Source: Nageia nagi (lineage: Eukaryota > Plantae > Pinophyta). From it: a stretch of 64,000 bases of DNA. Under the pieces are notes generated by a model. The model worked only from the letters and a program-made list of their open reading frames with translations. It did no database searches and was not told the DNA's origin. Of the stretch, positions 24,831 to 58,800 are shown in pieces. The first letter of the stretch is position 1. Every line of letters begins with the position of its first letter. The position numbers and the translations under genes are program-made. The stretch is taken from assembly GCA_050084985.1 (NCBI GenBank), contig JBITNC010000001.1, forward strand, positions 43,152,001-43,216,000. Direction: 5' to 3'.

Positions 24831-27295
24831 ACTATAGATTCTTAATAATAAACCAACATTAAACCAATTATAGGAAAAAGATGTTAGAAAATTTATTGAG
24901 AAAAAAAAATAGAATAGATTCAGAAGAAGCTCACATAGTATAGAAACAAATATAATCTCCTCACGCCTTAATAAACATAATAAATCAAATAAATAAATAA
25001 TATTGAAATAATATTTTTCAAGCAACAAAGACTTCAAATATAATATTTAATTTCATCTATTATTGCCAATAAATCATTAAAATAATGCAAGTTAATTTTG
25101 CAACAATGCAAAATATTATAGTTCATCAAGGCCAAGAACCTTAATATATCATAAATTATTTAAATAAAGCTTCAAATCAGTAGATCATTAGAAGTTGGAG
25201 ATAGAGCCAAAATGTACAACTTGATGTTAATTATTGAATGGGAGCAAGAAATTCAACAAGGACTAGCTCATAGAGCTCTATTAATATAATAATTAACAAA
25301 ATCCAAAGAATAACAATCAAGGTCTTCTAGATCTTTGAAAGTTGAAATGATGACCTTAATCAATGGATGAATTACATACCATTTTTTATAAAGTAGCTAA
25401 TAACAAGGACGAATTTTCATATTGGTCATCTACTTTGGATGAAGATATATTCCCTAATTTTATGAATATATTAGTCTCCTTACATCTTTAAGTGAAGAAA
25501 TAGATTCTAACCCTGTATGTTAGTGATCTAGTATCAATATTAAGTGATATGGCTTTATAGCTCAAGAATAAGGTTATATAATTCTAGATTCTATGTTTTG
25601 TTCACAAAACTCCCCCAAAATGCTACAAAGTATACTTTTAATTTTTTTATTATTTATTAATAATCCTACAAAAGTAATTTTGAGCTTATATACTTTATTT
25701 CAAAGAATATTTTGAGGATGACATTAGCCAACCATCCCAAAAGCTTTGGTATTGTAATAAGGTCTCATTTATATAAAGTTAGAACTTAGTTATGTTGATA
25801 TCAACAAAAAACAATAAAAGTATGGGTATATCTAAGATTGAAAATATCATGAGTTGATATCATCCTTTCTTAAAGTTCAAATCCTTTAAAAAGGATAACA
25901 AAAAATGAAAAAATATAAGGTTAGAATTTGTAATAGTCCACATAATCATTCATTTCTTAATATTTTAACCGTCAAGAGAATAACATTATAATATTGAAGG
26001 TTTAAAACTCAATTTATCTTTGAAGAAAATGATGTTAGCCACATAAAATAATTAGGAACATTAATGATCCGTTTAGGATAAGTAGAGTAATTAGCAATGG
26101 AACTTCAACATAATTTTCAATCTCTTTCTTGATAAATATCTTTCATTAAAAATATAAACATAATAAATAAAAAACTTTAACATTAGATAACTCTTTTTAT
26201 GTGAAGCATATACAACCTTAACATCACCCCCTCGCACGGTTGGTTTTTTTTGACAGTGTCATATGTTAGCGCAAAATCGTCTTGAGATTATTTTTCTTTA
26301 AAAAAAATTAAGGATAAAAGCATTCAAATTTCACCTTACGATTCAAGTTCAAAACCCATCAAGATATTTTACTTGTTGCAAATCCAACACTTAACTATTT
26401 TTAACCATTTTTTTCTTATTTTTTTACATAGAAATATAATCATCAAGTAATTAACTTGATAAAATCGCCAAACAATTAAACCGTTGAATTTTTTTTTTTG
26501 TAGAAATATACATCATACATCCAAGATATGTGTTAAAGGAGCGATACAAAATCAGAATAATGTTAAACTCTTTTTATAATGAAACATATTTAAAATGATT
26601 ATAATACAAAATGTTGATGATGATATACATCACACCAATCATTCCTTAGTAAACATATATCCAACACCAAAATCACATTCATAATAATGAGCAATTAAAA
26701 TTTTAATTGAATTTTTTTTTTGTACCGTTGACTATTGATAAGAAAATATTTCTTTACAAGCAAAGGACATGTAACTAGTCGTAATATACATGGAGATAAG
26801 AAGTGGAATGGAGGAGGTGAAAGATCACACCCAAAATCGAATATTACGAATGAGTGGAAATGTATCACAAAATCTTAGTTGTAATAACCGTTTGAGTATC
26901 CGTTGGAGCCGAGCCTTACATCAAATGATCAGACACGTGTCACAAAAGCCTTATAGCTGTAATAGCGTGAGAGTATCCAAAGAAGAGTGCATTGGAGCTT
27001 GAGCCATAAGACGGTGAAGCTTCGAGATTAGAGGCTGTTTTGTTTTTTGGGCTAATGGATTCAAGTTTTGAGTAGCGTGGGTGAGAGAAATAGAGTTAAA
27101 TCATAGTAATGGGGTTCACATCTGAAATGTAGATGTAGACGAAGAGAAGGAAAAGGGAGGTAGTATAATGGGGGAGAAGAGGAAGAGCTTATGTTGGAGT
27201 TCACTTCATGTTAGCAGACTCTCATTTGAATGGCCAACGGACACAATCCTATTGATTATGGCTTTACCTCTTTGATAGAAGAGGAAGAGGAAGAG

Positions 27296-27529
27296 GTCAA
27301 GATAGAAATTGTGAGTCAGATATGATTTGATTTGAGTTCTCTGTGGCCTGTTTATGTGTGGAGGGGCGCCTCTCAGCAAGAAGTCCATTGAAGAGTTTAT
27401 GTCTCTCTTCCCCAATGTCTCATTAATGTAGGTAATGTGGACTGCCATTTTTGGTAGGCTTGCTTTGTATACATGTGAGATGGTGTTTTGATTTCCTTCA
27501 GGTTTTTGCAGGGTTATGGGCTTACAGAT
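27296..27529 (+). pseudogene. 4-coumarate:CoA ligase-like (acyl-activating enzyme) gene fragment with its 80-nt intron; repeated in every unit (e.g. 33805-34037)
   Basis: VKIEIVS(R)YDL/SSL..MCGGAPLSKKSIEEFMSLFPNVSLM(Q) | GT 27432..AG 27511 | GYGLT. The YDLSSL, GGAPL and QGYGLTE motifs and the phase-0 intron between Q and G are typical of plant 4CL/4CL-like genes. Frameshifts are present. Confidence 0.9.
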
Positions 27530-27639
27530 GAATTGCTTGCACATGGTGATCAAGATGAATTATTTGTGCACTCCTTTTCCAATTTGAGGTGTTGGTGCTC
27601 ACCATTCTCCACCCATGGCCTAGCCACCATTGCTGCCAG
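27527..27639 (+). pseudogene. TIR1/AFB: TIR1/AFB auxin-receptor F-box gene fragment (end of exon 1 with donor site); 12 copies in the window
   Basis: Composite of copies: EL.L(K)RMVITDE---LLAHSFSNLKVLVLT----FSTHGLATIAA--R|GT, versus TIR1-type [49 protein letters not shown]|intron. Several small deletions. Confidence 0.88.
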
Positions 27640-27995
27640 GTATGCAATATCTTTCTCTTTTTGTTTATTTGTTTTGTCCTTGTTACTTGTCTCTGGCTTC
27701 TGTGTCACTTGTTTTTGCTTGGTTTTGAGAGTTTTATTGGTGTTGGTTTTAGCAGTTGGTTTTTCTTTTGTCCTTCCTTGTTCATTAGATGTGATAGGAG
27801 ACTTTACTTCACCATTGCAATATGCTCATAGCTGTATGCATAATCCCATCTTAACTCACAGTGATTTGAATATTTGTGTAATATTTTTCTGGTATGAGAA
27901 AAATACTTTTGATATGTTTAAAGAAATTATGAAACATATCAAATAATTAAGCAAAAAGAAGTATCATAGATTGCACAGAATTCATGCTTTAGCAG

Positions 27996-28035
27996 GAAAT
28001 TTATAACCATGCCTTACAAAGACTAAATACATGTG
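27996..28035 (+). other. Unidentified 40-nt exon-like module (EIYNH/RALQRLNTC)
   Basis: Bounded by CTTTAGCAG| and |GTAATC; open frame; present in all units. Confidence 0.45.
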
Positions 28036-28811
28036 GTAATCAGTAGATATTATCAACACCAAAGAGAGAAAAAAAAACTAGCTCAACATAGTAGATAATA
28101 ACAATACCCCACTAAATAAATGTGGTAATCAGTAGGGATTATCGAGACAACATAGTATATAATAACAATATCTCACAACATTACGTACGACTGGGCTGAT
28201 TTAGCAATAACCTATATGTAAAGAAGGAAAGATCCACTAGAAGATGCCAGAGAACCAACCGAATGAAAATAGAGGGACTATGGGCAAGTATACCAGTAAA
28301 CAGTTGGAAACTTTCTTCATAAAGATGATTTTAATAATTAATATCACAATTTTCAAATTCACATATTTTTAAATTCAGTTGGAATTTGCAAAATGTTGTG
28401 CTTTTTAGGTTGTCCTGGAAGACTTGCATCACCATATTATCGAATTCTTTTTTACATTTGTTTGTTTTTGCCTAACTAGTTTAGCTTTATCTTCTAGTTT
28501 CTAATGCTCCTGTTGGGCTTGTATAATGTTTGTAACCAACTAATTTTTTATTTATTGTTTGACTAATTTTATTTATCATTGTTCTTTGACTTTTTCACAT
28601 CTTCATAAAAATAGTTAAGAAAAGAGGAAGTCCTCTTTTGTTTAAGTGATTTGTTTAGAATTCTTTTTCTTTTATAAGGAAAGCTTTTAAATTGAAAATC
28701 TGATTTCCTTGTGTTGTTGGCTCCATACTTATTTTTCATTTGTGTCGTATCCATCTTTTGTCTCTTAAGATGTTGTACTTTTATTAAATGATTTTTTACT
28801 ACAATAACTAG

Positions 28812-28967
28812 GAGTTGCCTTAGCTTTCCTTGATATCAAGAGTTATACTCTAGAGTTCATAGCTTTGCATGGTAGAGCTTTTGCTTACTCATGGTTATGT
28901 GGAAGCCATGTCAACAGTTTCTTATGCATACTATTATGTTCTTGTCCTCAAAGCATATTATGACCAG
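28812..28967 (+). pseudogene. Unidentified ~156-nt exon-like fragment
   Basis: TAG|...CAG|GTAC. Reads ELP*LFLDIKSYTLEFIALHGRAF/..THGYVEAMSTVSYAYYSVLVLKAYYDQ across a frameshift. Source gene not recognised. Confidence 0.55.
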
Positions 28968-28984
28968 GTACAACCCTTGCTTAC

Positions 28985-31566
28985 CTTGGCGCACCTTTGA
29001 AGACTTGTCAATGTTTGTATGATTTTGAGGGCTTTGTGAATTTCTTGAATACATGTCTCCTAGAAATAGGATTTTTGTATTCTCTTGGAATGGAAGAGGA
29101 CTAGTTGGGATGTTGTATGGTTATGGCTATGGGGATATCTTCCCACCTAAAGTTTAAACATAAGATTCAAATAAGAATGAATGGGTAGCTAGAGAGCAGC
29201 AGGCCTTTTCCAACTTTAAACCTAAAATAAAGATCATTGTAGGAATTCTGGTATCTTATTTACTAATAATAGAATCTTGTATTCCCTAAATCTATATCGT
29301 ATATATCACAAAAGATATCTATGTTTAAACTAAAAATCCATGTATATTTGTAAAGAAATAACCTTATTATCTATTTAGTTTTTTCTATTTCCTTGAAATT
29401 TGTATTTATCTCTATTTTTTGTTCACATACATCTCCAAATAATGCGAACAAATTGAAAAGTCAAGTGATTTCTAGGAATTTTAAGGTGATCATGCATTAT
29501 CATGGCTTCTTCCATCATTATATTTGTATGGAAGAGCCAACATATTTTGCATGATCAAGGCATATGGTATCTCCCATGCAAATCATAAGTTTATTTGATG
29601 TACTGAGCAAGCCAAAGCAATCAACCTCAATAAGTTCTGTACAATCCAAACTCATAAATTGGAATCTAAATTGAACCAATGTAGAAAAAATTCTTTAAGT
29701 GGCAAGGTTATTTTTGAGTAAAAAAGCAAACCAATGCATTGGAAAGCAGTAGAAGAATGTCCATGCTATTGTCAAGAAATTAAATTCGTACGCCACCCAA
29801 GCGAATAACCTTGAAATATTTATCACTATGTGGGTGTTCTCATTCATTATTTATTACTATCTGGGTGTTCTCATTCATTATTTATCACTATCTGAGTGTT
29901 TTCATTCATATTTTGGAGTCTGTTAGTACTTGCAATGAGCTCTTTGATCTTTTCTTTCAATCTAGCATTTTCTGCACAATACCAACCTACTCTTTCCAAT
30001 TGTGAGGCAATCACTATCTTCAAAGTGTCAATCTCATTTCATAGCATTTGGATATTTCTGATTCAAAATACAATGCATTTTGTTTCTCTCATTCATCAGC
30101 TTTTGCTTTGGATTCTAGGTAACCAGCGCTTGCAGCCTTTCGATTTTGTCTTCCAACAATTTTGCCTCTCATATTCATAAGATATAATTGAAGCAATATA
30201 TGCAACAATTTCTGTTAAAGGATTCCGCCTCAGTGCAAAGATCTAACAACTTATAGCTTAGTTCTCTTCCTTTTTTAGTAATTTTTTGTATCTTAGTTTG
30301 TATGTCTTCGACATTACTTTGTATGTTTCTTGCCAACTATTGAAGCATTATATGCAACAATTTCTGCATCAAAGGACTCCACCTCAGTGCAATGATCTAA
30401 CAACTTATGGCTTAGTTCTCTTCCTTTTTTAGTAATCTTTTGTATCTTAGTTTGCATGTCTTCCAATTTACTTTTGTATGTTTCTTGTCAACTTATTATT
30501 TATGCTCTCATCTTTTTCGATTTTATCAACTGAATTTTGGTTCATTTCATTGAATTTCGGTAATCAGCGCTTGCAGCCTTTTGATTTTGTTTTCCAACAA
30601 TTCTCCCTCTCATATTCACTGGATACAATTGAAGCATTATATGCAACAATTTCCGTGTTAAAGGATTCCCCTCAGTGCAAAGATCTAACAACTTATAGCT
30701 TAGTTCTCTTCCTTTTTTAGTAATTTTTTGTATCTTTGTTTGCATGTCTTCGACTTTACTTTTATTTTTTTTTTTAACTATTGAAGCATTATATGCAACA
30801 ATTTCCATGCTAAAGGATTCGACCTCAGTACAAAGATCTAGAAAGCTTATGGATTAGTTCTCTTCCTTTTTTAGTAATCTTTTGTATCTTAGTTTGCATG
30901 TCTTCGAATTTACTTTGTATGTTTCTTGTCAACTTATTCCTTATGCCCTCATCTTTTTCGATTTTATCAAGTGAATTTTGGTTCGTTTCATTGAATTTCG
31001 GTAACCAGCGCTTGTAGCCTTTCGGTTTTGTTTTCCAACAGTTCTCCCTCTCATATTCACTATATACAATTGAAGCATTATATGCAACAATTTCTGTGTT
31101 AAAGGATTCCACCTTAGTGCAAAGATCTAACAAGTTATAGCTTAGTTCTCCCCTTTTTTAGTAATTTTTTGTGTCTTAGTTTGCTGGTCTTCAACTTTAC
31201 TTTGTATGTTTCTGTTGTCAACTATTGAAGCATTATATGCAACAATTTCTGTGTTAAAGGATTCCACCTCAGTGCAAAGATCTAACAACTTATGGCTTAG
31301 TTCTCTTTCTTTTTTAGTAATCTTTTGTATTTTAGTTTGCATGTCTTCGAATTTACTTTGTATGTTTCTTGTCAACTTATTCCTTATGTCCCATCTTTTT
31401 TTATTTTATCAAGTGAATTTTGGTTCGTTTCATTGGATTTCTTCATCTTGTTTACTAACTTGGCCATATCCATTTTCAATCTACAAGTAATTTTATCATT
31501 TTGTGTTTGTATTTCTTGAATGTTTCCCTGAGGGTTGCTCATGGCTAGTCGAATAAAATTTCATTT
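28985..31566. repeat. Segment B0, truncated paralog of 55487-58035
   Basis: Colinear from CTTGGCGCACC to GCTCATGGC..ATAAAATTT. Confidence 0.95.
29910..31542 (-). pseudogene. Orphan coiled-coil ORF with internal repeats, copy 1 (frameshifted)
   Basis: Starts MSNPQGNI at 31542; six RNIQSKFEDMQTKIQKITKKGRELSHKLLDLCTEVESFNTEIVAYNASIV modules; broken into several ORFs in the track. Confidence 0.65.
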
Positions 31567-31589
31567 TTTTTAACAACTTATGGCTTAGT

Positions 31590-32045
31590 TCTCATTAATG
31601 CTATAATGTGGACTACTATTTTTGGTAGGCTTGCTTTGTATACATGTGAGACAGTGTTTTGATTTCCTTCAAGTTTTTGCAGGGTTATGGGCTTACAGAT
31701 GAATTGCTTGCACATGGTGATCACGGATGAATTACTTGCACACTCCTTTTCCAATTTGAAGGTGTTGGTGCTCACCATTCTCCACCCATGGCCTAGCTAC
31801 CATTGCTGTCAGGTATGCAATATCTTTCTCTTTTTGTTTATTTGTTTTATCCTTGTTACTGTCTCTGGCTTCTATGTCACTTGTTTTTGCTTGGTTTTGA
31901 GAGTTTTATTGGTGTTGGTTTTAGCAGTTGGTTTTTCCTTTGTCCTTCCTTGTTCATTAGATGTGATAGGAGACTTTACTTCACCATTGCAATATGCTTG
32001 TAGCTGTATGCATAATCCCATCTTAACTACAGTGATTTGAATATT
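31590..32045 (+). repeat. Internal fragment of unit A, A0-like haplotype
   Basis: Keeps the 10-bp TGTTTTTGCT and other A0 states that are absent from array units. Confidence 0.85.
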
Positions 32046-33361
32046 TGGTGTTGGTTTTAGTAGTTGGTTTTTCCTTTGTCCTTCCTTGTTCATTAGATGT
32101 GATAGGAGACTTTACTTCACCGTTGCAATATGCTCGTAGCTGTATGCATAATCCCATCTTAACTCACAGTGATTTGAATATTTGTGTAATATTTTTTTGG
32201 TATGAGAAAAATACTTTTGATATGTTTAAAGAAATTACGAAACATATCAAATGATTAAACAAAAAGAAGTATCATAGAATGCACAGAATTCATGCTTTAG
32301 CAGGAAATTTATAACCGTGCCTTACAAAGACTAAATACATGTGGTAATCAGTAGATATTATCGACACACCAAAGAGAGCAAAAAAAATTAGCCCAACATA
32401 GTAGATAATAACAATACCCCACAAAATAAATGTGGTAATCAGTAGGGATTATCGAGACAACATAGTAGATAATAACAATATCCCACAACATTATGTAAGA
32501 CTGGGCTGGTTTAGCAATAAGCTATATGTAAAGAAGGAAAGATCCACTAGAAGATGCCAGAGAACCAATCGAATGAAAATAGAGGGACTATGGGCAAGTA
32601 TACCAGTAAACAGTTGGAATCTTTCTTCATAAAGATGATTTTAATAATTAATATCACAATTTTCAAATTCACATATTTTTAAATTCAGTTGCAAACTGTT
32701 GTGCTGGTTAGGTTGTCCTGGAAGACTTGCATCACCATATATCGAATTCTTTTTTACGTTTGTTTGTTTTTGCCTAACTAGTTTAGCTTTATCTTCTAGT
32801 TTCTAATGCTCTTGTTGGGCTTGTACAATGTTTGTAACCAACTAGTTTTCTATTTCCTCTTTGACTAATTTTATTTATCATTGTTCTTTGACTTTTTCAC
32901 TATCTTCATAAAAATAGTTAAGAAAAGAGGAAGTCCTCTTTTGTTTAAGTGATTTGTTTAGAATTCTTTTTCTTTTATAAGGAAAGATTTTAAATTGAAA
33001 ATCTGGTTTCCCTGTGTTGTTGGCTCCATACTTATTTTTCATTCGTGTCGTATCCATCTTTTGTCTCTTAAGATGTTGTACTTTTATTAAATGATTTTTT
33101 ACTACAATAACTAGGAGTTGCCTTAGCTCTTCCTTGATATCAAGAGTTATACTCTAGAGTTCATAGCTTTGCATGGTAGAGCTTTTGCTTACTCATGGTT
33201 ATGTGGAAGCCATGTCAACAGTTTCTTATGCATACTATTCTGTTCTTGTCCTCAAAGCATATTATGACCAGGTGCAACCCTTGCTTACATGGAGATAGGA
33301 AATCCCAAAATCGAATATTACGAATGAGTGGAAACGTATCACAAAAGCCTTATAGCTGTAA

Positions 33362-33451
33362 TAACCGTTTGAGTATCCGTTGGAGCCTGAGCCTTACGAG
33401 GAATGATCAGACACGTGTCACAAAAGCCTTACAGGTGTAATAGCCGTTAGA
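33362..33451. promoter_or_regulatory. MSA-like (AACGG) cluster plus palindromic G-box, once per unit
   Basis: Minus strand TCAAACGGTTA (33362-72), TCCAACGGATA (33374-84) and TCTAACGGCTA (33441-51; exact YCYAACGGYYA); GACACGTGTC at 33410-19. Function untested. Confidence 0.5.
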
Positions 33452-36400
33452 GTATCCAAAAAAGAGTGCATTGGATCTTGAGCCATTTGTTCTCCCTCTC
33501 GTTGCTTTAAAGGATAATACGGTAAAGCTTCAATATTGGAGGCTATTTTGTTTTTTGGGCTGATGGATTCAAGTTTTGAGTAGGTATGGGCGAGAGAAAT
33601 AGAATTAAATCATAGTGATGGGGTTCAAATCTGAATTGTAGATGTAGATGAAGAGAAGGAAAAGGGAGGTAGTATAATGGGGGAGAAGAGGAAGAGCTCA
33701 TGTTGGAGTTCACTTCATGTTAGCAGACTCTTGTTTCGACGGCCAACGGACACAATCCTGTTGATTATGGTTTAACCTCTTTGATAGAAGAGGAAGAGGA
33801 AGAGGTCAAGATAGAAATTGTGAGCAGATATGATTTGATTTGAGTTCTTTGCGGTCTATTTATGTGTGGAGGGGTGCCTCTCAACAAGATGTCCATTGAA
33901 GAGTTTATGTCTCTCTTCCCCAACATCTCATTAATGCAGGTAATGTGGACTGCCATTTTTGGTAGGCTTGCTTTGTATACATGTGAGATGGTGTTTTGAT
34001 TTCCTTCAGGTTTTTGCAGGGTTATGGGCTTACAGATGAATTGCTTGCGCATGGTGATTACAGATGAATTATTTGTGCACTCCTTTTCCAATTTGAAGGT
34101 GATGGTGCTCACCATTCTCCAGCCATGGCCTAGCCACCATTGCTACCAGGTATGCAATATCTTTCTCTTTTTGTTTATTTGTTTTGTCCTTGTTACTTGT
34201 CTCTGGCTTCCGTGTCACTTGGTTTTGAGAGTTTTATTAGTGTTGGTTTTAGTAGTTGGTTTTTCCTTTGTCCTTCCTTGTTCATTAGATGTGATAGGAG
34301 ACTTTACTTCACCGTTGCAATATGCTCGTAGCTATATGCATAATCCCATCTTAACTCACAGTGATTTGAATATTTGTGTAATATTTTTTTGGTATGAGAA
34401 AAATACTTTTGATATGTTTAAAGAAATTAGAAACATATCAAATGATTAAACAAAAAGAAGTATCATAGATTGCACAGAATTCATGCTTTAGCAGGAAATT
34501 TATAACCGTGCCTTACAAAGACTAAATACATGTGGTAATCAGTAGATATTATCGACACACCAAAGAGAGCATAAAAAACTAGCTCAACATAGTAGATAAT
34601 AACAATACCCCACCAAATAAATGTGGTAATCAGTAGGGATTATCGAGACAACATAGTAGATAATAACAATATCCCACAACATTATGTAAGACTGGGCTGG
34701 TTTAGCAATAAGCTATATGTAAAGAAGGAAAGATCCACTAGAAGATGCCAGAGAACCAATCGAATGAAAATAGAGGGACTATGGGCAAGTATACCAGTAA
34801 ACAGTTGGAAACTTTCTTCATAAAGATGATTTTAATAATTAATATCACAATTTTCAAATTCACATATTTTTAAATTCAGTTGAAATTTGCAAACTGTTGT
34901 GCTGGTTAGGTTGTCCTAGAAGACTTGCATCACCATATTATCGAATTCTTTTTTACGTTTGTTTGTTTTTGCCTAACTAGTTTAGCTTTATCTTCTAGTT
35001 TCTAATGCTCTTGTTGGGCTTGTACAATGTTTGTAACCAACTAATTTTTTATTTCCTCTTTGACTAATTTTATTTATCATTGTTCTTTGACTTTTTCACT
35101 ATCTTCATAAAAATAGTTAAGAAAAGAGGAAGTCCTCTTTTGTTTAAGTGATTTGTTTAGAATTCTTTTTCTTTTATAAGGAAAGATTTTAAATTGAAAA
35201 ATCTGGTTTCCCTGTGTTGTTGGCTCCATACTTATTTTTCATTTGTGTCGTATCCATCTTTTGTCTCTTAAGATGTTGTACTTTTATTAAATGATTTTTA
35301 CTACAAAACTAGGAGTTGCCTTAGCTCTTCCTTGATGTCAAGAGTTATACTCTAGAGTTCATAGCTTTGCATGGTAGAGCTTTTGCTTACTCATGGTCAT
35401 GTGGAAGCCATGTCAACAGTTTCTTATGCATACTATTCTGTTCTTGTCCTCAAAGCATATTATGACCAGGTCAACCCTTGCTTACATGGAGATAGGAAAT
35501 CCCAAAATCAAATATTACGAATGAGTGGAAACGTATCACAAAAGCCTTACAGCTGTAATAACCGTTTGAGTATCTGTTGGAGCCTGAGCCTTACGAGGAA
35601 TGATCAGACACGTGTCACAAAAGCCTTACAGGTGTAATAGCCGTTAGAGTATCCAAAAAAGAGTGCATTGGAGCTTGAGCCATTTGTTCTCCCTCTCGTT
35701 GCTTTAAAGGATAATACGGTAAAGCTTCAATATTGGAGGCTATTTTGTTTTTTGGGCTGATGGATTCAAGTTTTGAGTAGTATGGGCGAGAGAAATAGAA
35801 TTAAATCATAGTGATGGGGTTCAAATCTGAATTGTAGATGTAGATGAAGAGAAGGAAAAGGGAGGTAGTATAATGGGGGAGAAGAGGAAGAGCTCATGTT
35901 GGAGTTCACTCATGTTAGCAGACTCTTGTTTCGACGGCCAACGGACACAATCCTGTTGATTATGGTTTAACCTCTTTGATAGAAGAGGAAGAGGAAGAGG
36001 TCAAGATAGAAATTGTGAGCAGATATGATTTGATTTGAGTTCTTTGCGGTCTATTTATGTGTGGAGGGGTGCCTCTCAACAAGATGTCCATTGAAGAGTT
36101 TATGTCTCTCTTCCCCAACATCTCATTAATGCAGGTAATGTGGACTGCCATTTTTGGTAGGCTTGCTTTGTATACATGTGAGATGGTGTTTTGATTTCCT
36201 TCAGGTTTTTGCAGGGTTATGGGCTTACAGATGAATTGCTTGCGCATGGTGATTACGGATGAATTATTTGTGCACTCCTTTTCCAATTTGAAGGTGATGG
36301 TGCTCACCATTCTCCAGCCATGGCCTAGCCACCATTGCTACCAGGTATGCAATATCTTTCTCTTTTTGTTTATTTGTTTTGTCCTTGTTACTTGTCTCTG

Positions 36401-39400
36401 GCTTCCGTGTCACTTGGTTTTGAGAGTTTTATTAGTGTTGGTTTTAGCAGTTGGTTTATTCCTTTATCCTTCCTTGTTCATTAGATGTGATAGGAGACTT
36501 TACTTCACCGTTGCAATATGCTCGTAGCTATATGCATAATCCCATCTTAACTCACAGTGATTTGAATATTTGTGTAATATTTTTTTGGGATGAGAAAAAT
36601 ACTTTTGATATGTTTAAAGAAATTATGAAACATATCAAATGATTAAACAAAAAGAAGTATCATAGATTGCACAGAATTCATGCTTTAGCAGGAAATTTAT
36701 AACCATGCCTTACAAAGACTAAATACATGTGGTAATCAGTAGATATTATCGACACACCAAAGAGAGCAAAAAAAACTAGCTCAACATAGTAGATAATAAC
36801 AATACCCCACCAAATAAATGTGGTAATCAGTAGGGATTATCGAGACAACATAGTAGATAATAACAATATCCCACAACATTATGTAAGACTGGGCTGGTTT
36901 AGCAATAACTATATGTAAAGAAGGAAAGATCCACTAGAAGATGCCAGAGAACCAATCGAATGAAAATAGAGGGACTATGGGCAAGTATACCAGTAAACAG
37001 TTGGAAACTTTCTTCATAAAGATGATTTTAATAATTAATATCACAATTTTCAAATTCACATATTTTTAAATTTCAGTTGTGCAAACTGTTGTGCTGGTTA
37101 GGTTGTCCTGGAAGACTTGCATCACCATATTATCGAATTCTTTTTTACGTTTGTTTGTTTTTGCCTAACTAGTTTAGCTTTATCTTCTAGTTTCTAATGC
37201 TCTTGTTGGGCTTGTACAATGTTTGTAACCAACTAATTTTTTATTTCCTCTTTGACTAATTTTATTTATCATTGTTCTTTGACTTTTTCACTATCTTCAT
37301 AAAAATAGTTAAGAAAAGAGGAAGTCCTCTTTTGTTTAAGTGATTTGTTTAGAATTCTTTTTCTTTTATAAGGAAAGATTTTAAATTGAAAATCTGGTTT
37401 CCCTGTGTTGTTGGCTCCATACTTATTTTTCATTCGTGTCGTATCCATCTTTTGTCTCTTAAGATGTTGTACTTTTATTAAATGATTTCTTACTACAATA
37501 ACTAGGAGTTGCCTTAGCTCTTCCTTGATGTCAAGAGTTATACTCTAGAGTTCATAGCTTTGCATGGTAGAGCTTTTGCTTACTCATGGTTATGTGGAAG
37601 CCATGTCAACAGTTTCTTATGCATACTATTCTGTTCTTGTCCTCAAAGCATATTATGACCAGGTGCAACCCTTGCTTACATGGAGATAGGAAATCCCAAA
37701 ATCGAATATTACGAATGAGTGGAAACGTATCACAAAAGCCTTACAGCTGTAATAACCGTTTGAGTATCCGTTGGAGCCTGAGCCTTACGAGGAATGATCA
37801 GACACGTGTCACAAAAGCCTTACAGGTGTAATAGCTGTTAGAGTATCCAAAAAAGAGTGCATTGGAGCTTGAGCCATTTGTTCTCCCTCTCGTTGCTTTA
37901 AAGGATAATACGGTAAAGCTTCAATATTGGAGGCCATTTTGTTTTTTGGGCTGATGGATTCAAGTTTTGAGTAGGTATGGGCGAGAGAAATAGAATTAAA
38001 TCATAGTGATGGGGTTCAAATCTGAATTGTAGATGTAGATGAAGAGAAGGAAAAGGGAGGTAGTATAATGGGGGAGAAGAGGAAGAGCTCATGTTGGAGT
38101 TCACGTCATGTTAGCAGACTCCTGTTTCGACGGCCAACGGACACAATCCTGTTGATTATGGTTTAACCTCTTTGATAGAAGAGGAAGAGGAAGAGGTCAA
38201 GATAGAAATTGTGAGCAGATATGATTTGATTTGAGTTCTTTGCAGTCTATTTATGTGTGGAGGGGTGCCTCTCAACAAGATGTCCATTGAAGAGTTTATG
38301 TCTCTCTTCCCCAACATCTCATTAATGCAGGTAATGTGGACTGCCATTTTTGGTAGGCTTGCTTTGTATACATGTGAGATGGTGTTTTGATTTCCTTCAG
38401 GTTTTTGCAGGGTTATGGGCTTACAGATGAATTGCTTGCGCATGGTGATTACGGATGAATTATTTGTGCACTCCTTTTCCAATTTGAAGGTGATGGTGCT
38501 CACCATTCTCCAGCCATGGCCTAGCCACCATTGCTACCAGGTATGCAATATCTTTCTCTTTTTGTTTATTTGTTTTGTCCTTGTTACTTGTCTCTGGCTT
38601 CCGTGTCACTTGGTTTTGAGAGTTTTATTAGTGTTGGTTTTAGAAGTTGGTTATTCCTTTATCCTTCCTTGTTCATTAGATGTGATAGGAGACTTTACTT
38701 CACCGTTGCAATATGCTCGTAGCTATATGCATAATCCCATCTTAACTCACAGTGATTTGAATATTTGTGTAATATTTTTTTGGTATGAGAAAAATACTTT
38801 TGATATGTTTAAAGAAATTATGAAACATATCAAATGATTAAACAAAAAGAAGTATCATAGATTGCACAGAATTCATGCTTTAGCAGGAAATTTATAACCG
38901 TGCCTTACAAAGACTAAATACATGTGGTAATCAGTAGATATTATCGACACACCAAAGAGAGCAAAAAAAACTAGCTCAACATAGTAGATAATAACAATAC
39001 CCCACCAAATAAATGTGGTAATCAGTAGGGATTATCGAGACAACATAGTAGATAATAACAATATCCCACAACATTATGTAAGACTGGGCTGGTTTAGCAA
39101 TAAGCTATATGTAAAGAAGGAAAGATCCACTAGAAGATGCCAGAGAACCAATCGAATGAAAATAGAGGGACTATGGGCAAGTATACCAGTAAACAGTTGG
39201 AATCTTTCTTCATAAAGATGATTTTAATAATTAATATCACAATTTTCAAATTCACATATTTTTAAATTCAGTTGCAAACTGTTGTGCTGGTTAGGTTGTC
39301 CTGGAAGACTTGCATCACCATATTATCGAATTCTTTTTTACGTTTGTTTGTTTTTGCCTAACTAGTTTAGCTTTATCTTCTAGTTTCTAATGCTCTTGTT

Positions 39401-42400
39401 GGGCTTGTACAATGTTTGTAACCAACTAGTTTTTTATTTCCTCTTTGACTAATTTTATTTATCATTGTTCTTTGACTTTTTCACTATCTTCATAAAAATA
39501 GTTAAGAAAGAGAAGTCCTCTTTTGTTTAAGTGATTTGTTTAGAATTCTTTTTCTTTTATAAGGAAAGATTTTAAATTGAAAATCTGGTTTCCCTGTGTT
39601 GTTGGCTCCATACTTATTTTTCATTCGTGTCGTATCCATCTTTTGTCTCTTAAGATGTTGTACTTTTATTAAATGATTTCTTACTACAATAACTAGGAGT
39701 TGCCTTAGCTCTTCCTTGATATCAAGAGTTATACTCTAGAGTTCATAGCTTTGCATGGTAGAGCTTTTGCTTACTCATGGTTATGTGGAAGCCATGTCAA
39801 CAGTTTCTTATGCATACTATTCTGTTCTTGTCCTCAAAGCATATTATGACCAGGTGCAACCCTTGCTTACATGGAGATAGGAAATCCCAAAATAGAATAT
39901 TACGAATGAGTGGAAACGTATCACAAAAGCCTTACAGCTGTAATAACCGTTTGAGTATCCGTTGGAGCCTGAGCCTTACGAGGAATGATCAGACACGTGT
40001 CACAAAAGCCTTACAGGTGTAATAGCCGTTAGAGTATCCAAAAAAGAGTGCATTGGAGCTTGAGCCATTTGTTCTCCCTCTCGTTGCTTTAAAGGATAAT
40101 ACGGTAAAGCTTCAATATTGGAGGCTATTTTGTTTTTTGGGCTGATGGATTCAAGTTTTGAGTAGGTATGGGCGAGAGAAATAGAATTAAATCATAGTGA
40201 TGGGGTTCAAATCTGAATTGTAGATGTAGATGAAGAGAAGGAAAAGGGAGGTAGTATAATGGGGGAGAAGAGGAAGAGCTCATGTTGGAGTTCACTTCAT
40301 GTTAGCAGACTCTTGTTTCGACGGCCAACGGACACAATCCTGTTGATTATGGTTTAACCTCTTTGATAGAAGAGGAAGAGGAAGAGGTCAAGATAGAAAT
40401 TGTGAGCAGATATGATTTGATTTGAGTTCTTTGCGGTCTATTTATGTGTGGAGGGGTGCCTCTCAACAAGATGTCCATTGAAGAGTTTATGTCTCTCTTC
40501 CCCAACATCTCATTAATGCAGGTAATGTGGACTGCCATTTTTGGTAGGCTTGCTTTGTATACATGTGAGATGGTGTTTTGATTTCCTTCAGGTTTTTGCA
40601 GGGTTATGGGCTTACAGATGAATTGCTTGCGCATGGTGATTACGGATGAATTATTTGTGCACTCCTTTTCCAATTTGAAGGTGATGGTGCTCACCATTCT
40701 CCAGCCATGGCCTAGCCACCATTGCTACCAGGTATGCAATATCTTTCTCTTTTGGTTTATTTGTTTTGTCCTTGTTACTTGTCTTTGGCTTCCGTGTCAC
40801 TTGGTTTTGAGAGTTTTATTAGTGTTGGTTTTAGTAGTTGGTTTTTCCTTTGTCCTTCCTTGTTCATTAGATGTGATAGGAGACTTTACTTCACCGTTGC
40901 AATATGCTCGTAGCTATATGCATAATCCCATCTTAACTCACAGTGATTTGAATATTTGTGTAATATTTTTTTGGTATGAGAAAAATACTTTTGATATGTT
41001 TAAAGAAATTACGAAACATATCAAATGATTAAACAAAAAGAAGTATCATAGATTGCACAGAATTCATGCTTTAGCAGGAAATTTATAACCGTGCCTTACA
41101 AAGACTAAATACATGTGGTAATCAGTAGATATTATCGACACAACAAAGAGAGCAAAAAAAACTAGCTCAACATAGTAGATAATAACAATACCCCACCAAA
41201 TAAATGTGGTAATCAGTAGGGATTATCGAGACAACATAGTAGATAATAACAATATCCCACAACATTATGTAAGACTGGGCTGGTTTAGCAATAAGCTATA
41301 TGTAAAGAAGGAAAGATCCACTAGAAGATGCCAGAGAACCAATCGAATGAAAATAGAGGGACTATGGGCAAGTATACCAGTAAACAGTTGGAAACTTTCT
41401 TCATAAAGATGATTTTAATAATTAATATCACAATTTTCAAATTCACATATTTTTAAATTCAGTTGAAATTTGCAAACTGTTGTGCTGGTTAGGTTGTCCT
41501 GGAAGACTTGCATCACCATATTATCGAATTCTTTTTTACGTTTGTTTGTTTTTGCCTAACTAGTTTAGCTTTATCTTCTAGTTTCTAATGCTCTTGTTGG
41601 GCTTGTACAATGTTTGTAACCAACTAATTTTTTATTTCCTCTTTGACTAATTTTATTTATCATTGTTCTTTGACTTTTTCACTATCTTCATAAAAATAGT
41701 TAAGAAAAGAGGAAGTCCTCTTTTGTTTAAGTGATTTGTTTAGAATTCTTTTTCTTTTATAAGGAAAGATTTTAAATTGAAAATCTGGTTTCCCTGTGTT
41801 GTTGGCTCCATACTTATTTTTCATTCGTGTCGTATCCATCTTTTGTCTCTTAAGATGTTGTACTTTTATTAAATGATTTCTTACTACAATAACTAGGAGT
41901 TGCCTTAGCTCTTCCTTGATATCAAGAGTTATACTCTAGAGTTCATAGCTTTGCATGGTAGAGCTTTTGCTTACTCATGGTTATGTGGAAGCCATGTCAA
42001 CAGTTTCTTATGCATACTATTCTGTTCTTGTCCTCAAAGCATATTATGACCAGGTGCAACCCTTGCTTACATGGAGATAGGAAATCCCAAAATCGAATAT
42101 TACGAATGAGTGGAAACGTATCACAAAAGCCTTACAACTGTAATAACCGTTTGAGTATCCGTTGGAGCCTGAGCCTTACGAGGAATGATCAGACACGTGT
42201 CACAAAAGCCTTACAGGTGTAATAGCCGTTAGAGTATCCAAAAAAGAGTGCATTGGAGCTTGAGCCATTTGTTCTCCCTCTCGTTGCTTTAAAGGATAAT
42301 ACGGTAAAGCTTCAATATTGGAGGCTATTTTGTTTTTTGGGCTGATGGATTCAAGTTTTGAGTAGGTATGGGCGAGAGAAATAGAATTAAATCATAGTGA

Positions 42401-45400
42401 TGGGGTTCAAATCTGAATTGTAGATGTAGATGAAGAGAAGGAAAAGGGAGGTAGTATAATGGGGGAGAAGAGGAAGAGCTCATGTTGGAGTTCACTTCAT
42501 GTTAGCAGACTCTTGTTTCGACGGCCAACGGACACAATCCTGTTGATTATGGTTTAACCTCTTTGATAGAAGAGGAAGAGGAAGAGGTCAAGATAGAAAT
42601 TGTGAGCAGATATGATTTGATTTGAGTTCTTTGCGGTCTATTTATGTGTGGAGGGGTGCCTCTCAACAAGATGTCCATTGAAGAGTTTATGTCTCTCTTC
42701 CCCAACATCTCATTAATGCAGGTAATGTGGATTACCATTTTTGGTAGGCTTGCTTTGTATACATGTGAGATGGTGTTTTGATTTCCTTCAGGTTTTTGCA
42801 GGGTTATGGGCTGACAGATGAATTGCTTGCGCATGGTGATTACGGATGAATTATTTGTGCACTCCTTTTCCAATTTGAAGGTGATGGTGCTCACCATTCT
42901 CCAGCCATGGCCTAGCCACCATTGCTACCAGGTATGCAATATCTTTCTCTTTTTGTTTATTTGTTTTGTCCTTGTTACTTGTCTCTGGCTTCCGTGTCAC
43001 TTGGTTTTGAGAGTTTTATTAGTGTTGGTTTTAGTAGTTGGTTTTTCCTTTGTCCTTCCTTGTTCATTAGATGTGATAGGAGACTTTACTTCACCGTTGC
43101 AATATGCTCGTAGCTATATGCATAATCCCATCTTAACTCACAGTGATTTGAATATTTGTGTAATATTTTTTTGGTATGAGAAAAATACTTTTGATATGTT
43201 TAAAGAAATTAGGAAACATATCAAATGATTAAACAAAAAGAAGTATCATAGATTGCACAGAATTCATGCTTTAGCAGGAAATTTATAACCGTGCCTTACA
43301 AAGACTAAATACATGTGGTAATCAGTAGATATTATCGACACACCAAAGAGAGCATAAAAAACTAGCTCAACATAGTAGATAATAACAATACCCCACCAAA
43401 TAAATGTGGTAATCAGTAGGGATTATCGAGACAACATAGTAGATAATAACAATATCCCACAACATTATGTAAGACTGGGCTGGTTTAGCAATAAGCTATA
43501 TGTAAAGAAGGAAAGATCCACTAGAAGATGCCAGAGAACCAATCGAATGAAAATAGAGGGACTATGGGCAAGTATACCAGTAAACAGTTGGAAACTTTCT
43601 TCATAAAGATGATTTTAATAATTAATATCACAATTTTCAAATTCACATATTTTTAAATTCAGTTGAAATTTACAAACTGTTGTGCTGGTTAGGTTGTCCT
43701 GGAAGACTTGCATCACCATATTATCGAATTCTTTTTTACGTTTGTTTGTTTTTGCCTAACTAGTTTAGCTTTATCTTCTAGTTTCTAATGCTCTTGTTGG
43801 GCTTGTACAATGTTTGTAACCAACTAATTTTTTATTTCCTCTTTGACTAATTTTATTTATCATTGTTCTTTGACTTTTTCACTATCTTCATAAAAATAGT
43901 TAAGAAAAGAGGAAGTCCTCTTTTGTTTAAGTGATTTGTTTAGAATTCTTTTCTTTTATAAGGAAAGATTTTAAATTGAAAATCTGGTTTCCCTGTGTTG
44001 TTGGCTCCATACTTATTTTTCATTCGTGTCGTATCCATCTTTTGTCTCTTAAGATGTTGTACTTTTATTAAATGATTTCTTACTACAATAACTAGGAGTT
44101 GCCTTAGCTCTTCCTTGATATCAAGAGTTATACTCTAGAGTTCATAGCTTTGCATGGTAGAGCTTTTGCTTACTCATGGTTATGTGGAAGCCATGTCAAC
44201 AGTTTCTTATGCATACTATTCTGTTCTTGTCCTCAAAGCATATTATGACCAGGTGCAACCCTTGCTTACATGGAGATAGGAAATCCCAAAATCGAATATT
44301 ACGAATGAGTGGAAACGTATCACAAAAGCCTTACAGCTGTAATAACCGTTTGAGTATCCGTTGGAGCCTGAGCCTTACGAGGAATGATCAGACACGTGTC
44401 ACAAAAGCCTTACAGGTGTAATAGCTGTTAGAGTATCCAAAAAAGAGTGCATTGGAGCTTGAGCCATTTGTTCTCCCTCTCGTTGCTTTAAAGGATAATA
44501 CGGTAAAGCTTCAATATTGGAGGCTATTTTGTTTTTTGGGCTGATGGATTCAAGTTTTGAGTAGGTATGGGCGAGAGAAATAGAATTAAATCATAGTGAT
44601 GGGGTTCAAATCTGAATTGTAGATGTAGATGAAGAGAAGGAAAAGGGAGGTAGTATAATGGGGGAGAAGAGGAAGAGCTCATGTTGGAGTTCACTTCATG
44701 TTAGCAGACTCTTGTTTCGACGGCCAACGGACACAATCCTGTTGATTATGGTTTAACCTCTTTGATAGAAGAGGAAGAGGAAGAGGTCAAGATAGAAATT
44801 GTGAGCAGATATGATTTGATTTGAGTTCTTTGCGGTCTATTTATGTGTGGAGGGGTGCCTCTCAACAAGATGTCCATTGAAGAGTTTATGTCTCTCTTCC
44901 CCAACATCTCATTAATGCAGGTAATGTGGATTACCATTTTTGGTAGGCTTGCTTTGTATACATGTGAGATGGTGTTTTGATTTCCTTCAGGTTTTTGCAG
45001 GGTTATGGGCTGACAGATGAATTGCTTGCGCATGGTGATTACGGATGAATTATTTGTGCACTCCTTTTCCAATTTGAAGGTGATGGTGCTCACCATTCTC
45101 CAGCCATGGCCTAGCCACCATTGCTACCAGGTATGCAATATCTTTCTCTTTTTGTTTATTTGTTTTGTCCTTGTTACTTGTCTCTGGCTTCCGTGTCACT
45201 TGGTTTTGAGAGTTTTATTAGTGTTGGTTTTAGTAGTTGGTTTTTCCTTTGTCCTTCCTTGTTCATTAGATGTGATAGGAGACTTTACTTCACCGTTGCA
45301 ATATGCTCGTAGCTATATGCATAATCCCATCTTAACTCACAGTGATTTGAATATTTGTGTAATATTTTTTTGGTATGAGAAAAATACTTTTGATATGTTT

Positions 45401-48400
45401 AAAGAAATTAGGAAACATATCAAATGATTAAACAAAAAGAAGTATCATAGATTGCACAGAATTCATGCTTTAGCAGGAAATTTATAACCGTGCCTTACAA
45501 AGACTAAATACATGTGGTAATCAGTAGATATTATCGACACACCAAAGAGAGCATAAAAAACTAGCTCAACATAGTAGATAATAACAATACCCCACCAAAT
45601 AAATGTGGTAATCAGTAGGGATTATCGAGACAACATAGTAGATAATAACAATATCCCACAACATTATGTAAGACTGGGCTGGTTTAGCAATAAGCTATAT
45701 GTAAAGAAGGAAAGATCCACTAGAAGATGCCAGAGAACCAATCGAATGAAAATAGAGGGACTATGGGCAAGTATACCAGTAAACAGTTGGAAACTTTCTT
45801 CATAAAGATGATTTTAATAATTAATATCACAATTTTCAAATTCACATATTTTTAAATTCAGTTGCAAACTGTTGTGCTGGTTAGGTTGTCCTGGAAGACT
45901 TGCATCACCATATTATCGAATTCTTTTTTACGTTTGTTTGTTTTTGCCTAACTAGTTTAGCTTTATCTTCTAGTTTCTAATGCTCTTGTTGGGCTTGTAC
46001 AATGTTTGTAACCAACTAATTTTTTATTTCCTCTTTGACTAATTTTATTTATCATTGTTCTTTGACTTTTTCACTATCTTCATAAAAATAGTTAAGAAAA
46101 GAGGAAGTCCTCTTTTGTTTAAGTGATTTGTTTAGAATTCTTTTCTTTTATAAGGAAAGATTTTAAATTGAAAATCTGGTTTCCCTGTGTTGTTGGCTCC
46201 ATACTTATTTTTCATTCGTGTCGTATCCATCTTTTGTCTCTTAAGATGTTGTACTTTTATTAAATGATTTCTTACTACAATAACTAGGAGTTGCCTTAGC
46301 TCTTCCTTGATATCAAGAGTTATACTCTAGAGTTCATAGCTTTGCATGGTAGAGCTTTTGCTTACTCATGGTTATGTGGAAGCCATGTCAACAGTTTCTT
46401 ATGCATACTATTCTGTTCTTGTCCTCAAAGCATATTATGACCAGGTGCAACCCTTGCTTACATGGAGATAGGAAATCCCAAAATCGAATATTACGAATGA
46501 GTGGAAACGTATCACAAAAGCCTTACAGCTGTAATAACCGTTTGAGTATCCGTTGGAGCCTGAGCCTTACGAGGAATGATCAGACACATGTCACAAAAGC
46601 CTTACAGGTGTAATAGCCGTTAGAGTATCCAAAAAAGAGTGCATTGGAGCTTGAGCCATTTGTTCTCCCTCTCGTTGCTTTAAAGGATAATACGGTAAAG
46701 CTTCAATATTGGAGGCTATTTTGTTTTTTGGGCTGATGGATTCAAGTTTTGAGTAGGTATGGGCGAGAGAAATAGAATTAAATCATAGTGATGGGGTTCA
46801 AATCTGAATTGTAGATGTAGATGAAGAGAAGGAAAAGGGAGGTAGTATAATGGGGGAGAAGAGGAAGAGCTCATGTTGGAGTTCACTTCATGTTAGCAGA
46901 CTCTTGTTTCGATGGCCAACGGACACAATCCTGTTGATTATGGTTTAACCTCTTTGATAGAAGAGGAAGAGGAAGAGGTCAAGATAGAAATTGTGAGCAG
47001 ATATGATTTGATTTGAGTTCTTTGCGGTCTATTTATGTGTGGAGGGGTGCCTCTCAACAAGATGTCCATTGAAGAGTTTATGTCTCTCTTCCCCAACATC
47101 TCATTAATGCAGGTAATGTGGACTGCCATTTTTGGTAGGCTTGCTTTGTATACATGTGAGATGGTGTTTTGATTTCCTTCAGGTTTTTGCAGGGTTATGG
47201 GCTTACAGATGAATTGCTTGCGCATGGTGATTACGGATGAATTATTTGTGCACTCCTTTTCCAATTTGAAGGTGATGGTGCTCACCATTCTCCAGCCATG
47301 GCCTAGCCACCATTGCTACCAGGTATGCAATATCTTTCTCTTTTGGTTTATTTGTTTTGTCCTTGTTACTTGTCTTTGGCTTCCGTGTCACTTGGTTTTG
47401 AGAGTTTTATTAGTGTTGGTTTTAGTAGTTGGTTTTTCCTTTGTCCTTCCTTGTTCATTAGATGTGATAGGAGACTTTACTTCACCGTTGCAATATGCTC
47501 GTAGCTATATGCATAATCCCATCTTAACTCACAGTGATTTGAATATTTGTGTAATATTTTTTTGGTATGAGAAAAATACTTTTGATATGTTTAAAGAAAT
47601 TACGAAACATATCAAATGATTAAACAAAAAGAAGTATCATAGATTGCACAGAATTCATGCTTTAGCAGGAAATTTATAACCGTGCCTTACAAAGACTAAA
47701 TACATGTGGTAATCAGTAGATATTATCGACACACCAAAGAGAGCAAAAAAAACTAGCTCAACATAGTAGATAATAACAATACCCCACCAAATAAATGTGG
47801 TAATCAGTAGGGATTATCGAGACAACATAGTAGATAATAACAATATCCCACAACATTATGTAAGACTGGGCTGGTTTAGCAATAAGCTATATGTAAAGAA
47901 GGAAAGATCCACTAGAAGATGCCAGAGAACCAATCGAATGAAAATAGAGGGACTATGGGCAAGTATACCAGTAAACAGTTGGAAACTTTCTTCATAAAGA
48001 TGATTTTAATAATTAATATCACAATTTTCAAATTCACATATTTTTAAATTCAGTTGAAATTTGCAAACTGTTGTGCTAGTTAGGTTGTCCTGGAAGACTT
48101 GCATCACCATATTATCGAATTCTTTTTTACGTTTGTTTGTTTTTGCCTAACTAGTTTAGCTTTATCTTCTAGTTTCTAATGCTCTTGTTGGGCTTGTACA
48201 ATGTTTGTAACCAACTAATTTTTTTTCCTCTTTGACTAATTTTATTTATCATTGTTCTTTGACTTTTTCACTATCTTCATAAAAATAGTTAAGAAAAGAG
48301 GAAGTCCTCTTTTGTTTAAGTGATTTGTTTAGAATTCTTTTTCTTTTATAAGGAAAGATTTTAAATTGAAAATCTGGTTTCCCTGTGTTGTTGGCTCCAT

Positions 48401-53320: not shown

Positions 53321-53793
53321 TTTTTGGGCTGATGGATTCAAGTTTTGAGTAGCTATGGGCGAGAGAAATAGAATTAAATCATAGTGATGGGGTTCAAATC
53401 TGAATTGTAGATGTAGATGAAGAGAAGGAAAAGGGAGGTAGTATAATGGGGGAGAAGAGGAAGAGCTCATGTTGGAGTTCACTTCATGTTAGCAGACTCT
53501 TGTTTCGACGGCCAACGGACACAATCCTGTTGATTATGGTTTAACCTCTTTGATAGAATTTTTGGGCTGATGGATTCAAGTTTTGAGTAGCTATGGGAGA
53601 GAAATAGAATTAAATCATAGTGATGGGGTTCAATCTGAATTGTAGATGTAGATGAAGAGAAGGAAAAGGGAGGTAGTATAATGGGGGAGAAGAGGAAGAG
53701 CTCATGTTGGAGTTCACTTCATGTTAGCAGACTCTTGTTTCGACGGCCAACGGACACAATCCTGTTGATTATGGTTTAACCTCTTTGATAGAA
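53321..53793 (+). repeat. ~238-bp internal tandem duplication in the last unit
   Basis: 53321-53558 repeated from 53559 with small deletions. Confidence 0.85.
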
Positions 53794-58035: not shown

Positions 58036-58800
58036 TTGTTGGTATCCAAAGCTTTTTGAAGATGAATCTTTGTATTAATCTCCTCTTGATCCCTTCTTCC
58101 TCCTAAATCTTGATCAAGAAGCATAGTCCTTGTTGCTTTCCAAGATTTAGATGACTATGTACACCCACTCTAGACTTCTTCCATCAATTCTGAAACCCTT
58201 AGGTTTAGGATATTATTTTGTGACACGAGTGTGTGGCATTCTTCTTCCTTTCTTTCAATTTATTTTTGATATTTTATCACCTACGTATTTTCTTCACTCA
58301 GCTGTGAGACTTTTGCAGGGTTTTTATTAGTGTATTCTCTTAGCTTATTAATAACTCTATCCTTTCTGCCCTCAATCTAGACATTACTATTTCATATTGT
58401 CCAGTAATAGTATAGAGATGAATTGGTGTAATTCTTTTCAGAAGATAATAAAATCTCGTTCTCATATTGCAACGCTTCTACTACAATATTTATTTGGGCA
58501 TAATTTATGATAAATACTTATAGTAGACTTTGCCGAAGCTTTTACTCCCAAGCGAAGAAAGCATGATGCTATCAACCCTGTAAGAGATAGCATGGATATT
58601 AGTTGATTTTAATATTTTGTTTTATTAGTAGTCTAAACAATGTCTCTAATGGTCTCATAGATGCCAGGATAGAAAATAGACTTTTGACTCTTTGGTGAAA
58701 TTTTGTAATTATTCTGCATTTGAAACTCCCTCTTTGTAGAACGTGATATATGCATTTAGAAATATTTGTTGTGTACTCTTTCTAAAATTGCTTTCCCTGT

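Follow-up and report, generated by a model that had tools for sequence, protein, structure and literature searches.

A patchwork exon of F-box-like and 4CL-like pieces in Nageia nagi, probably part of a transcribed pseudogene amplified in tandem

Can a single plant exon take its acceptor from one gene and its donor from another, and if so, what kind of process would have put the two together? The question is raised by positions 27296-27645 of a 64,000-nucleotide stretch of the genome of Nageia nagi (the window, in what follows, along which all positions are counted). An initial annotation, made by reading the letters, saw there a 4CL-like piece that has kept its own intron, a switch to TIR1/AFB sequence in the following exon right after GYGLT and the letters GA, and an end at the native exon-1 donor of the second gene. 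It went on to propose that the pieces had been copied as DNA, by a Pack-MULE or a Helitron. We confirm that the mosaic of exons and intron is real. The hybrid exon and the copying at the level of DNA both stand, and the Pack-MULE or Helitron mechanism finds no support. That reading had missed the F-box sequence that lies also upstream and extends to 27207, a 2.2-kb unit that is present 12 times, and a splice to an exon at 58818. The features are collected in Table 1, in which, as in the text, a caret marks a joint or a splice site.

Table 1. Features of the chimera (solo copy) and of the tandem array that follows it.
Feature	Position	Strand	Remarks
Solo unit, 2.2 kb	26790..28984	+	self-BLAST; 95% identical to array units
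Putative promoter-like leader	26790..27042	+	two ~75-bp direct repeats; CACGTG 26934-26939
Exon A, chimeric transcript	27043..27431	+	X4/X7 contigs; 5′ limit approximate
S1, F-box (TIR1/AFB-like) donor	about 27131..27207	+	5′UTR, ATG 27168, 13 codons (MGEKRKSLCWSSL)
S2, filler	27208..27317	+	GAA-rich 3′ end; matches neither donor-type contig
S3a, 4CL-like (AMP-binding) exon, 3′ part, decayed	about 27318..27431	+	reading, Pfam, 758-nt contig
Retained 4CL-like donor intron, GT..AG, 80 nt	27432..27511	+	absent from X4/X7, present in X1/X2
Exon B	27512-27640	+	starts GYGLT, then TIR1-like text; ends CCAG^GTATGC
S3b, next 4CL-like exon, first 17 nt (GYGLT+GA)	27512..27528	+	donor-type contig matches 27508-27528
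S4, TIR1/AFB-like F-box-LRR exon-1 3′ end up to donor	27529..27640	+	frameshifted, small deletions
U-rich intron start behind TIR1-type donor	27641..27842	+	A content 0.149; also seen unspliced (X4/X7)
Flank copy 1, ~2.6 kb	28985..31585	+	93% identical to 55487-58037; 441-bp x3 repeats 30118-31441 (TRF)
Partial unit	31590..33288	+	begins at unit position 27418 inside 4CL-like exon; best-preserved TIR1-like reading
Head-to-tail array, 10 units	33289..55486	+	2191-2200 bp each; last 2429 bp
Flank copy 2	55487..58057	+	93% alike to flank copy 1
Exon C	58818..58908	+	ag^TATTCGC...ATAAG^gtacgt; spliced to exon-B donor in a relative

We have compared the 2,195-nt solo unit with public sequencing runs, four of which match (X1, X2, X4 and X7). 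No run has more than 29% of the words of the unit, and therefore the runs come from related organisms and not from this genome. The tool that we used labels X4 and X7 as "RNA?" and X1 and X2 as "DNA?", and these labels are guesses by the tool. We observe that intron-less joints appear only in X4 and X7, which cover just the exon-like parts, and that the contigs of the DNA? type, from X1 and X2, contain the chimera including its intron, at about 94% identity.

The contigs labelled RNA? represent three types of transcript. In the first, found in X4 and X7 with depths of 90 and 53, the whole chimera is represented: the exon A stretch 27077-27426 is contiguous, at about 94% identity, and is joined to 27507-27552 and onward. 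Because the letters TGCAG are repeated, the joint from 27426 to 27507 is the excision of 27432-27511. The second type is a 758-nt contig for the 4CL-like donor. It matches the window only at 27328-27424 and 27508-27528, where it reads ...SLTQ^GYGLT, and it does not resemble the window for 195 letters on one side and about 443 on the other; its exon junction coincides exactly with the position of the retained intron. The third type, for the F-box donor, is a contig of depth 290 that matches only 27161-27207 and 27604-27637. From these contigs it is seen that two separate expressed genes supplied neighbouring pieces, one giving way to the other at about 27528.

Most of what had been read from the letters is recovered in this way. 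The 4CL-like piece does carry its own intron, an 80-nt GT..AG intron that is excised in the contigs labelled RNA?; similarity to the 4CL-like transcript stops at 27528, which is the very position that had been given for the switch; and the transcript types of the relatives support an exon whose acceptor side is 4CL-like and whose donor side is TIR1/AFB-like. The TIR1/AFB-like part does run to a native exon-1 donor, at 27640^27641, which is used in a relative. Finally, an intron that is retained and can still be spliced means copying at the level of DNA and not retroposition, as the DNA? and RNA? contigs bear out.

The breakpoints of the mosaic lie at 27207^27208 and at about 27528. At the second of them, the origin changes between 27528 and 27534, and the similarity to TIR1 that is supported by a search tool begins at 27534. 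The S3a exon reads (R)YDL-SSLWPVYV-GGAPLSKKSIEEFMSLFPNVSLM(Q) once 5 duplicated nt (ATTTG) and one inserted nt are set aside. The solo copy has at 27357-27431 the sequence CGGAPLSKKSIEEFMSLFPNVSLM, and then TAG. In all array copies this codon is CAG (Q), so that the TAG of the solo copy is a later C>T change. The 80-nt intron of the solo copy is identical to that of an array copy. In exon B, the solo copy has an unbroken frame of 43 codons by accident only, through two 1-nt deletions that set it apart from the other copies; the array and partial copies have the TIR1-like text in a different frame, as VMGLQMNCLHMVITDELLAHSFSNLKVLVLT, followed by a shift, and then PFS(T/S)HGLATIA(A/T)R. Past the donor, the X4 and X7 contigs also run contiguously across 27605-27826. 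An internal duplication of 24-28 nt in exon B that the relatives seemed to lack was considered and dropped, as the loose end of the relatives at 27552 shows both stretches.

At the other end, the contigs match exon A from 27077, with 16-34 unmatched letters further upstream. The leader has a GC content of 0.415 vs 0.233 in the left flank, and the transcribed contigs start just downstream of it. Its two direct repeats of ~75 bp, at 26849-26999 and with the CACGTG in the second one, could be promoter elements that the copy took over from the F-box gene.

How well can the two donors be named? For the 4CL-like one, a 31-aa piece (27336-27428) finds AMP-binding (PF00501) as its lone Pfam family, with an E-value of 0.3 and 10.3 bits, vs a cut-off of 29.9. 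The match falls at positions 291-312 of the 384 of the profile, directly ahead of the GYGxTE block. The ten best named neighbours of the same piece in the ESM Atlas are all AMP-binding proteins, which we take as a lead only. The motif block GGAPL...QGYGxTE defines the 4CL-like or ANL (AMP-binding) family, and by direct reading the block is present here, with an intron before GYG; the separate transcript, SLTQ^GYGLT, has the same junction. These matches are sub-threshold but convergent, and they hint that 27318-27528 may come from a 4CL-like gene, a donor known only as the relatives' contig.

For the F-box donor, we have used the best-preserved copy, at 31663-31812. Among 177,635 PDB sequences its lone match is TIR1 (2p1m_B), with an E-value of 0.12; the alignment sets CLHMVITD...ELLAHSFSNLKVLVL against TIR1 residues 112-139, from the equivalent of 27534 onward. 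The ESM Atlas neighbours of this piece are plant F-box-LRR proteins. The contig of depth 290 adds its two loose ends. Past 27207 it continues as CTGATGAGCTTCTGGGACATATG..., which is in frame with the ATG at 27168 and gives MGEKRKS(L/S)CWSSL-PDELLGHMFS, the start of an F-box. For comparison with PDELLGHMFS, TIR1 residues 10-21 are PEEVLEHVFSFI in the PDB alignment. A complete TIR1/AFB receptor has an F-box and 18 leucine-rich repeats with the auxin/InsP6 pocket; the F-box motif is visible only in this loose end of the donor-type transcript, as the chimera has been left with ~13 plus 40 donor codons. Past 27637 the contig continues as CATTGCAGGAAACTA..., and reads IAAHCRKL, which we take to resemble the IAATCRNL of TIR1, the exon-1 boundary presumably being within the R codon. 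Judging from this loose end, the chimera appears to be short of 6 nt (CATTGC) just before its donor, relative to the donor-type transcript. By local alignment, the 5′UTR of the donor still resembles 27131-27160 (p 0.015), and the F-box transcript has no similarity to the window beyond 27207 or beyond 27637; both of its loose ends (the F-box motif region and the start of exon 2) are absent from the window. A sub-threshold match and loose ends of 30 letters suggest, tentatively, a TIR1/AFB-like gene as the donor of S1 and S4, with other F-box-LRR families possible.

Tests of family membership from sequence had to be performed on decayed pieces of 24-50 aa, the exons being searched separately. 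With five short pieces, phmmer against PDB reports either nothing or spurious matches to D14L/KAI2 and RACK1 (E about 1) and to NDUFA11 (E 2.4), and the NCBIfam profile search of the short pieces reports no match. A search for homologous proteins gave no candidate with three shared 5-residue words, within a length window that left out full-length donors. In a search of 1.84 billion protein representatives, the TIR1-like piece retrieved one spurious repeat protein (P0001).

Where does the transcript go after exon B? Beyond 27639, the loose end of the X4 and X7 contigs matches 58818-58847 with one mismatch, where 0 such matches are expected by chance. This is exon C, and it lies beyond the array. 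The exon-B donor closest to it is at 54149, which makes an intron of 4.67 kb. In a relative, then, transcription of the chimera begins from the 5′ end of the F-box gene itself, and splicing takes place at the 4CL intron and from the TIR1-type donor to 58818-58908.

The 12 units (one solo, one partial, and 10 full) span 26.8-55.5 kb, in the order solo unit, flank, partial unit, the 10 full units, and the flank again, followed by exon C. The pairwise identity of the array units is 98.7-99.9%. Units are joined as GCTTAC^ATGGAGATA (GCTTAC^ATGGAG), with a 3-nt microhomology, TAC, that is common to the left flank of the solo unit; the ends of the latter are ...AATATAC^ATGGAGATA and ...GCTTAC^CTTGG. 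The transcript of the relative has in common with the array type 9 of 21 differences, and thus the chimera is older than the split between solo and array copies.

Some units have changed further. A tandem duplication of 235 bp (98%) in the last array unit, at 53321-53793, spans the region of the transcript start and the inherited ATG, and accounts for the unit's length of 2429 bp. In the partial unit there is another one of 136-144 bp (97%) at 31909-32184, in the intron-like stretch that follows exon B. A tandem repeat of 441-443 bp, present three times and with a 154-bp sub-repeat, occurs in each of the flank copies (30118-31441 and 56587-57913). On their minus strand these repeats have coiled-coil-like reading frames that stay open for as many as 197 aa, and for which Pfam reports generic coiled-coil matches only. 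Every unit here contains a segment of 1,054 bp (27843-28895) that some copies in the relatives lack: contigs of all four related runs, DNA? and RNA? alike, show a joint from 27842 to 28896/28898. Either this lineage has gained the segment or that of the relatives has lost it. Its ends show no evident inverted repeats or target-site duplication.

Does the chimeric RNA code for anything? The frame that starts at the inherited ATG closes after 32-35 codons. In the copy of the relative, the 4CL frame closes a few codons past the junction. The frames of the donor genes are all broken by stops and frameshifts, and no long ORF is left. When the solo copy is compared with the array, the exon segments diverge by 4.7-8.8%, vs 2.2-4.7% for the other non-exonic parts of the unit, the leader being the highest at 10.5%. 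With this divergence, and with substitutions that are mostly transitions, we conclude that the exons are not under constraint. Taken together, the early stop of the ATG frame, the broken frames, and the unconserved exons imply that the RNA is most likely non-coding and without a selected function. Two ORFs are open in most units, one of 116 aa antisense to the chimera (27206-27553, minus strand), and one of 136-152 aa that extends from exon B into the A-poor intron (27488-27946, plus strand); neither has a family match. The second is open because of the A content of 0.15 in 27641-27842.

What process, then, would have assembled the locus? F-box sequence is found also upstream of the 4CL-like DNA, so that the latter is an internal replacement in a partial F-box copy. 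We infer that part of a TIR1/AFB-type F-box gene was copied as genomic DNA. The copy would have comprised the upstream region, the 5′UTR, the ATG with 13 codons from the start of exon 1, ~35-40 codons from the end of that exon, the donor, and the start of the intron. While this copy was being made, or later, the inside of exon 1, with the F-box and the first repeats, would have been swapped for about 320 bp of foreign DNA, of which about 200 bp may come from a 4CL-like acyl-activating-enzyme gene: an exon end with the 80-nt intron behind it, plus 17 nt of the exon that follows. Breakpoints this abrupt, with no transposon ends, would fit break repair, either by end joining or by template switching with filler DNA. 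The 2.2-kb block would have been duplicated head to tail at the TAC microhomology, and expansion or homogenisation, probably by unequal crossing-over, would have led to 10 near-identical units next to one partial unit and an older solo copy; the segment made of unit and flank would have been duplicated as well. This account, of a transcribed and non-coding chimeric pseudogene that began as a break-repair patchwork in a partial F-box gene duplicate and was later amplified in tandem, is the one that we consider probable.

A different account keeps the transposon: a Pack-MULE, a CACTA-type element or a Helitron captured both gene fragments, and its ends have decayed, were lost in the duplications, or lie outside the window or the parts of it compared. 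Chimeric gene-fragment loci are common in plants, and Pack-MULEs, Helitrons and Tgm-Express typically carry multi-gene chimeras that have retained introns and are transcribed as chimeras (PMC13317346, PMC1947982). Like a Pack-MULE, this locus holds fragments of host genes, from several genes and with introns, and its surroundings are rich in transposons (RVT_2 and RVT_3 ORFs, LTR copies). It does not look like a processed pseudogene, with introns absent and a poly(A) tail, as the 80-nt intron is kept in the DNA. The retained intron rules out retroposition, but alone it does not point to a Pack-MULE or a Helitron. As for the traces that such elements leave, neither the piece nor the unit nor the locus as a whole is flanked by inverted repeats of at least 25 nt; when the left side (23.9-27.1 kb) is compared with the flank and with 55.4-64 kb, the matches are no longer than 21 nt and due to chance; and a strict Helitron scan of both strands of the 64-kb window, which accepts perfect hairpins only, reports 0 sites with a perfect GC-rich hairpin and CTRR(T). 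The unit ends are ATGGAG...GCTTAC, not the TC...CTRR of a Helitron, and they have no letters in common beyond TAC. As neither terminal inverted repeats nor Helitron ends turn up in the window, and hence no place at which a target-site duplication of 9-10 bp would sit, the proposal of a Pack-MULE or Helitron is not borne out. Moreover, one F-box gene supplied both outer segments, which have kept their native order and orientation as well as the transcription start of that gene; this looks rather like a gene duplicate with an internal patch than like stacked fragments. We find capture by a transposon unlikely.

Could the locus be doing something? It might be a functional regulatory locus, in which spliced lncRNA or small RNAs from promoter-bearing fragments act in trans on both donor genes. 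The chimera is spliced in a relative, with the depths given above, conserved GT..AG sites and a fixed downstream exon, and such depth and conservation of splice sites could indicate a function of the RNA; the array copies are held 99% alike; and siRNAs from the gene fragments of siren loci bring about methylation of related genes in trans (bioRxiv 10.1101/2021.06.10.447945). On the other hand, the exons diverge faster than most of the non-exonic unit sequence, recent amplification accounts equally for the high identity of the units, and an Rfam scan finds no family in the window. We rate this reading as quite improbable, and for the bolder version of it, in which the array is a selected device of twelve promoter-bearing decoys, with F-box 5′ end and 4CL-like sequence, whose RNAs tune the donors in trans, the chances are slim. 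Finally, the peptides could be merely 4CL-like and TIR1-like by chance, and the locus an ordinary non-coding repeat unit. The matches from sequence are all below significance, and many searches came back blank. However, two transcripts of the relatives each match exactly one part of the chimera, one of them with a junction at the retained intron; the lone Pfam match and the lone PDB match are to the predicted families and at mutually consistent positions; and the GC content is 0.41-0.47 in the chimera exons vs 0.23-0.32 in the flanking DNA outside the unit. We find a chance resemblance very hard to believe.

How does the locus compare with systems already described? Pack-MULEs, Helitrons and Tgm-Express (CACTA) have in common with it that unrelated fragments bearing introns are joined in DNA and give spliced chimeric transcripts (PMC13317346, PMC1947982), but here no transposon ends were found, the outer pieces are from one gene in native order, and the copies are in tandem and not dispersed in the window. 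The patches of filler DNA and the partial duplicates left by double-strand-break repair in plants are alike in their short genic inserts, abrupt breakpoints, and lack of transposon ends. The gene fragments of siren loci in Brassica rapa and Arabidopsis are non-functional themselves and can regulate their parent genes via 24-nt siRNAs (bioRxiv 10.1101/2021.06.10.447945). They share with this locus the non-functional fragments within intergenic, transposon-adjacent DNA, whereas here we have a spliced transcript of polymerase-II type (in a relative) and a 2.2-kb tandem array. Loci of the siren type are marked by 24-nt siRNAs that abound in reproductive tissue. Macrosatellite-like arrays born in place also consist of head-to-tail units of ~99% identity that meet at a microhomology, with an older, diverged copy nearby, but the unit here is a promoter-bearing chimeric pseudogene and not retrotransposon sequence.

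The locus is thus of an ordinary kind for plants, a pseudogene locus with a decayed patchwork of two genes. It is a well-resolved case of an exon patchwork that was built and amplified with no transposon in sight: one relative shows the transcripts of both donors together with the chimera, the promoter and the splice sites are native ones put to new use, and a tandem burst comes later. Only if the RNA were shown to have a function would the case alter the current picture of gene-fragment chimeras.

The window is AT-rich plant DNA (GC 27-37%), and retrotransposon remnants occupy its first 24 kb. Upstream of the array there are a copia-type RVT_2 ORF (9224-9598) and an RVT_3 ORF (395-811), and an LTR-like repeat is found four times, at 7097-7567, 14876-15531 and 18396-18901 in the same orientation, and at 23089-23849 inverted. 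The four copies start with TGTTGG and have a mutual identity of 74-87%. Together with the RVT ORFs they are nested retrotransposon remains. A tRNA scan of the window reports no gene. At the end of the window, 63270-64000 on the plus strand has short exon-like stretches with ag/gt borders, for which Pfam has no match; these stretches (e.g. ...CSNSACQERSYILFSSIWKSEFQ^gt) may be part of a gene downstream of exon C.
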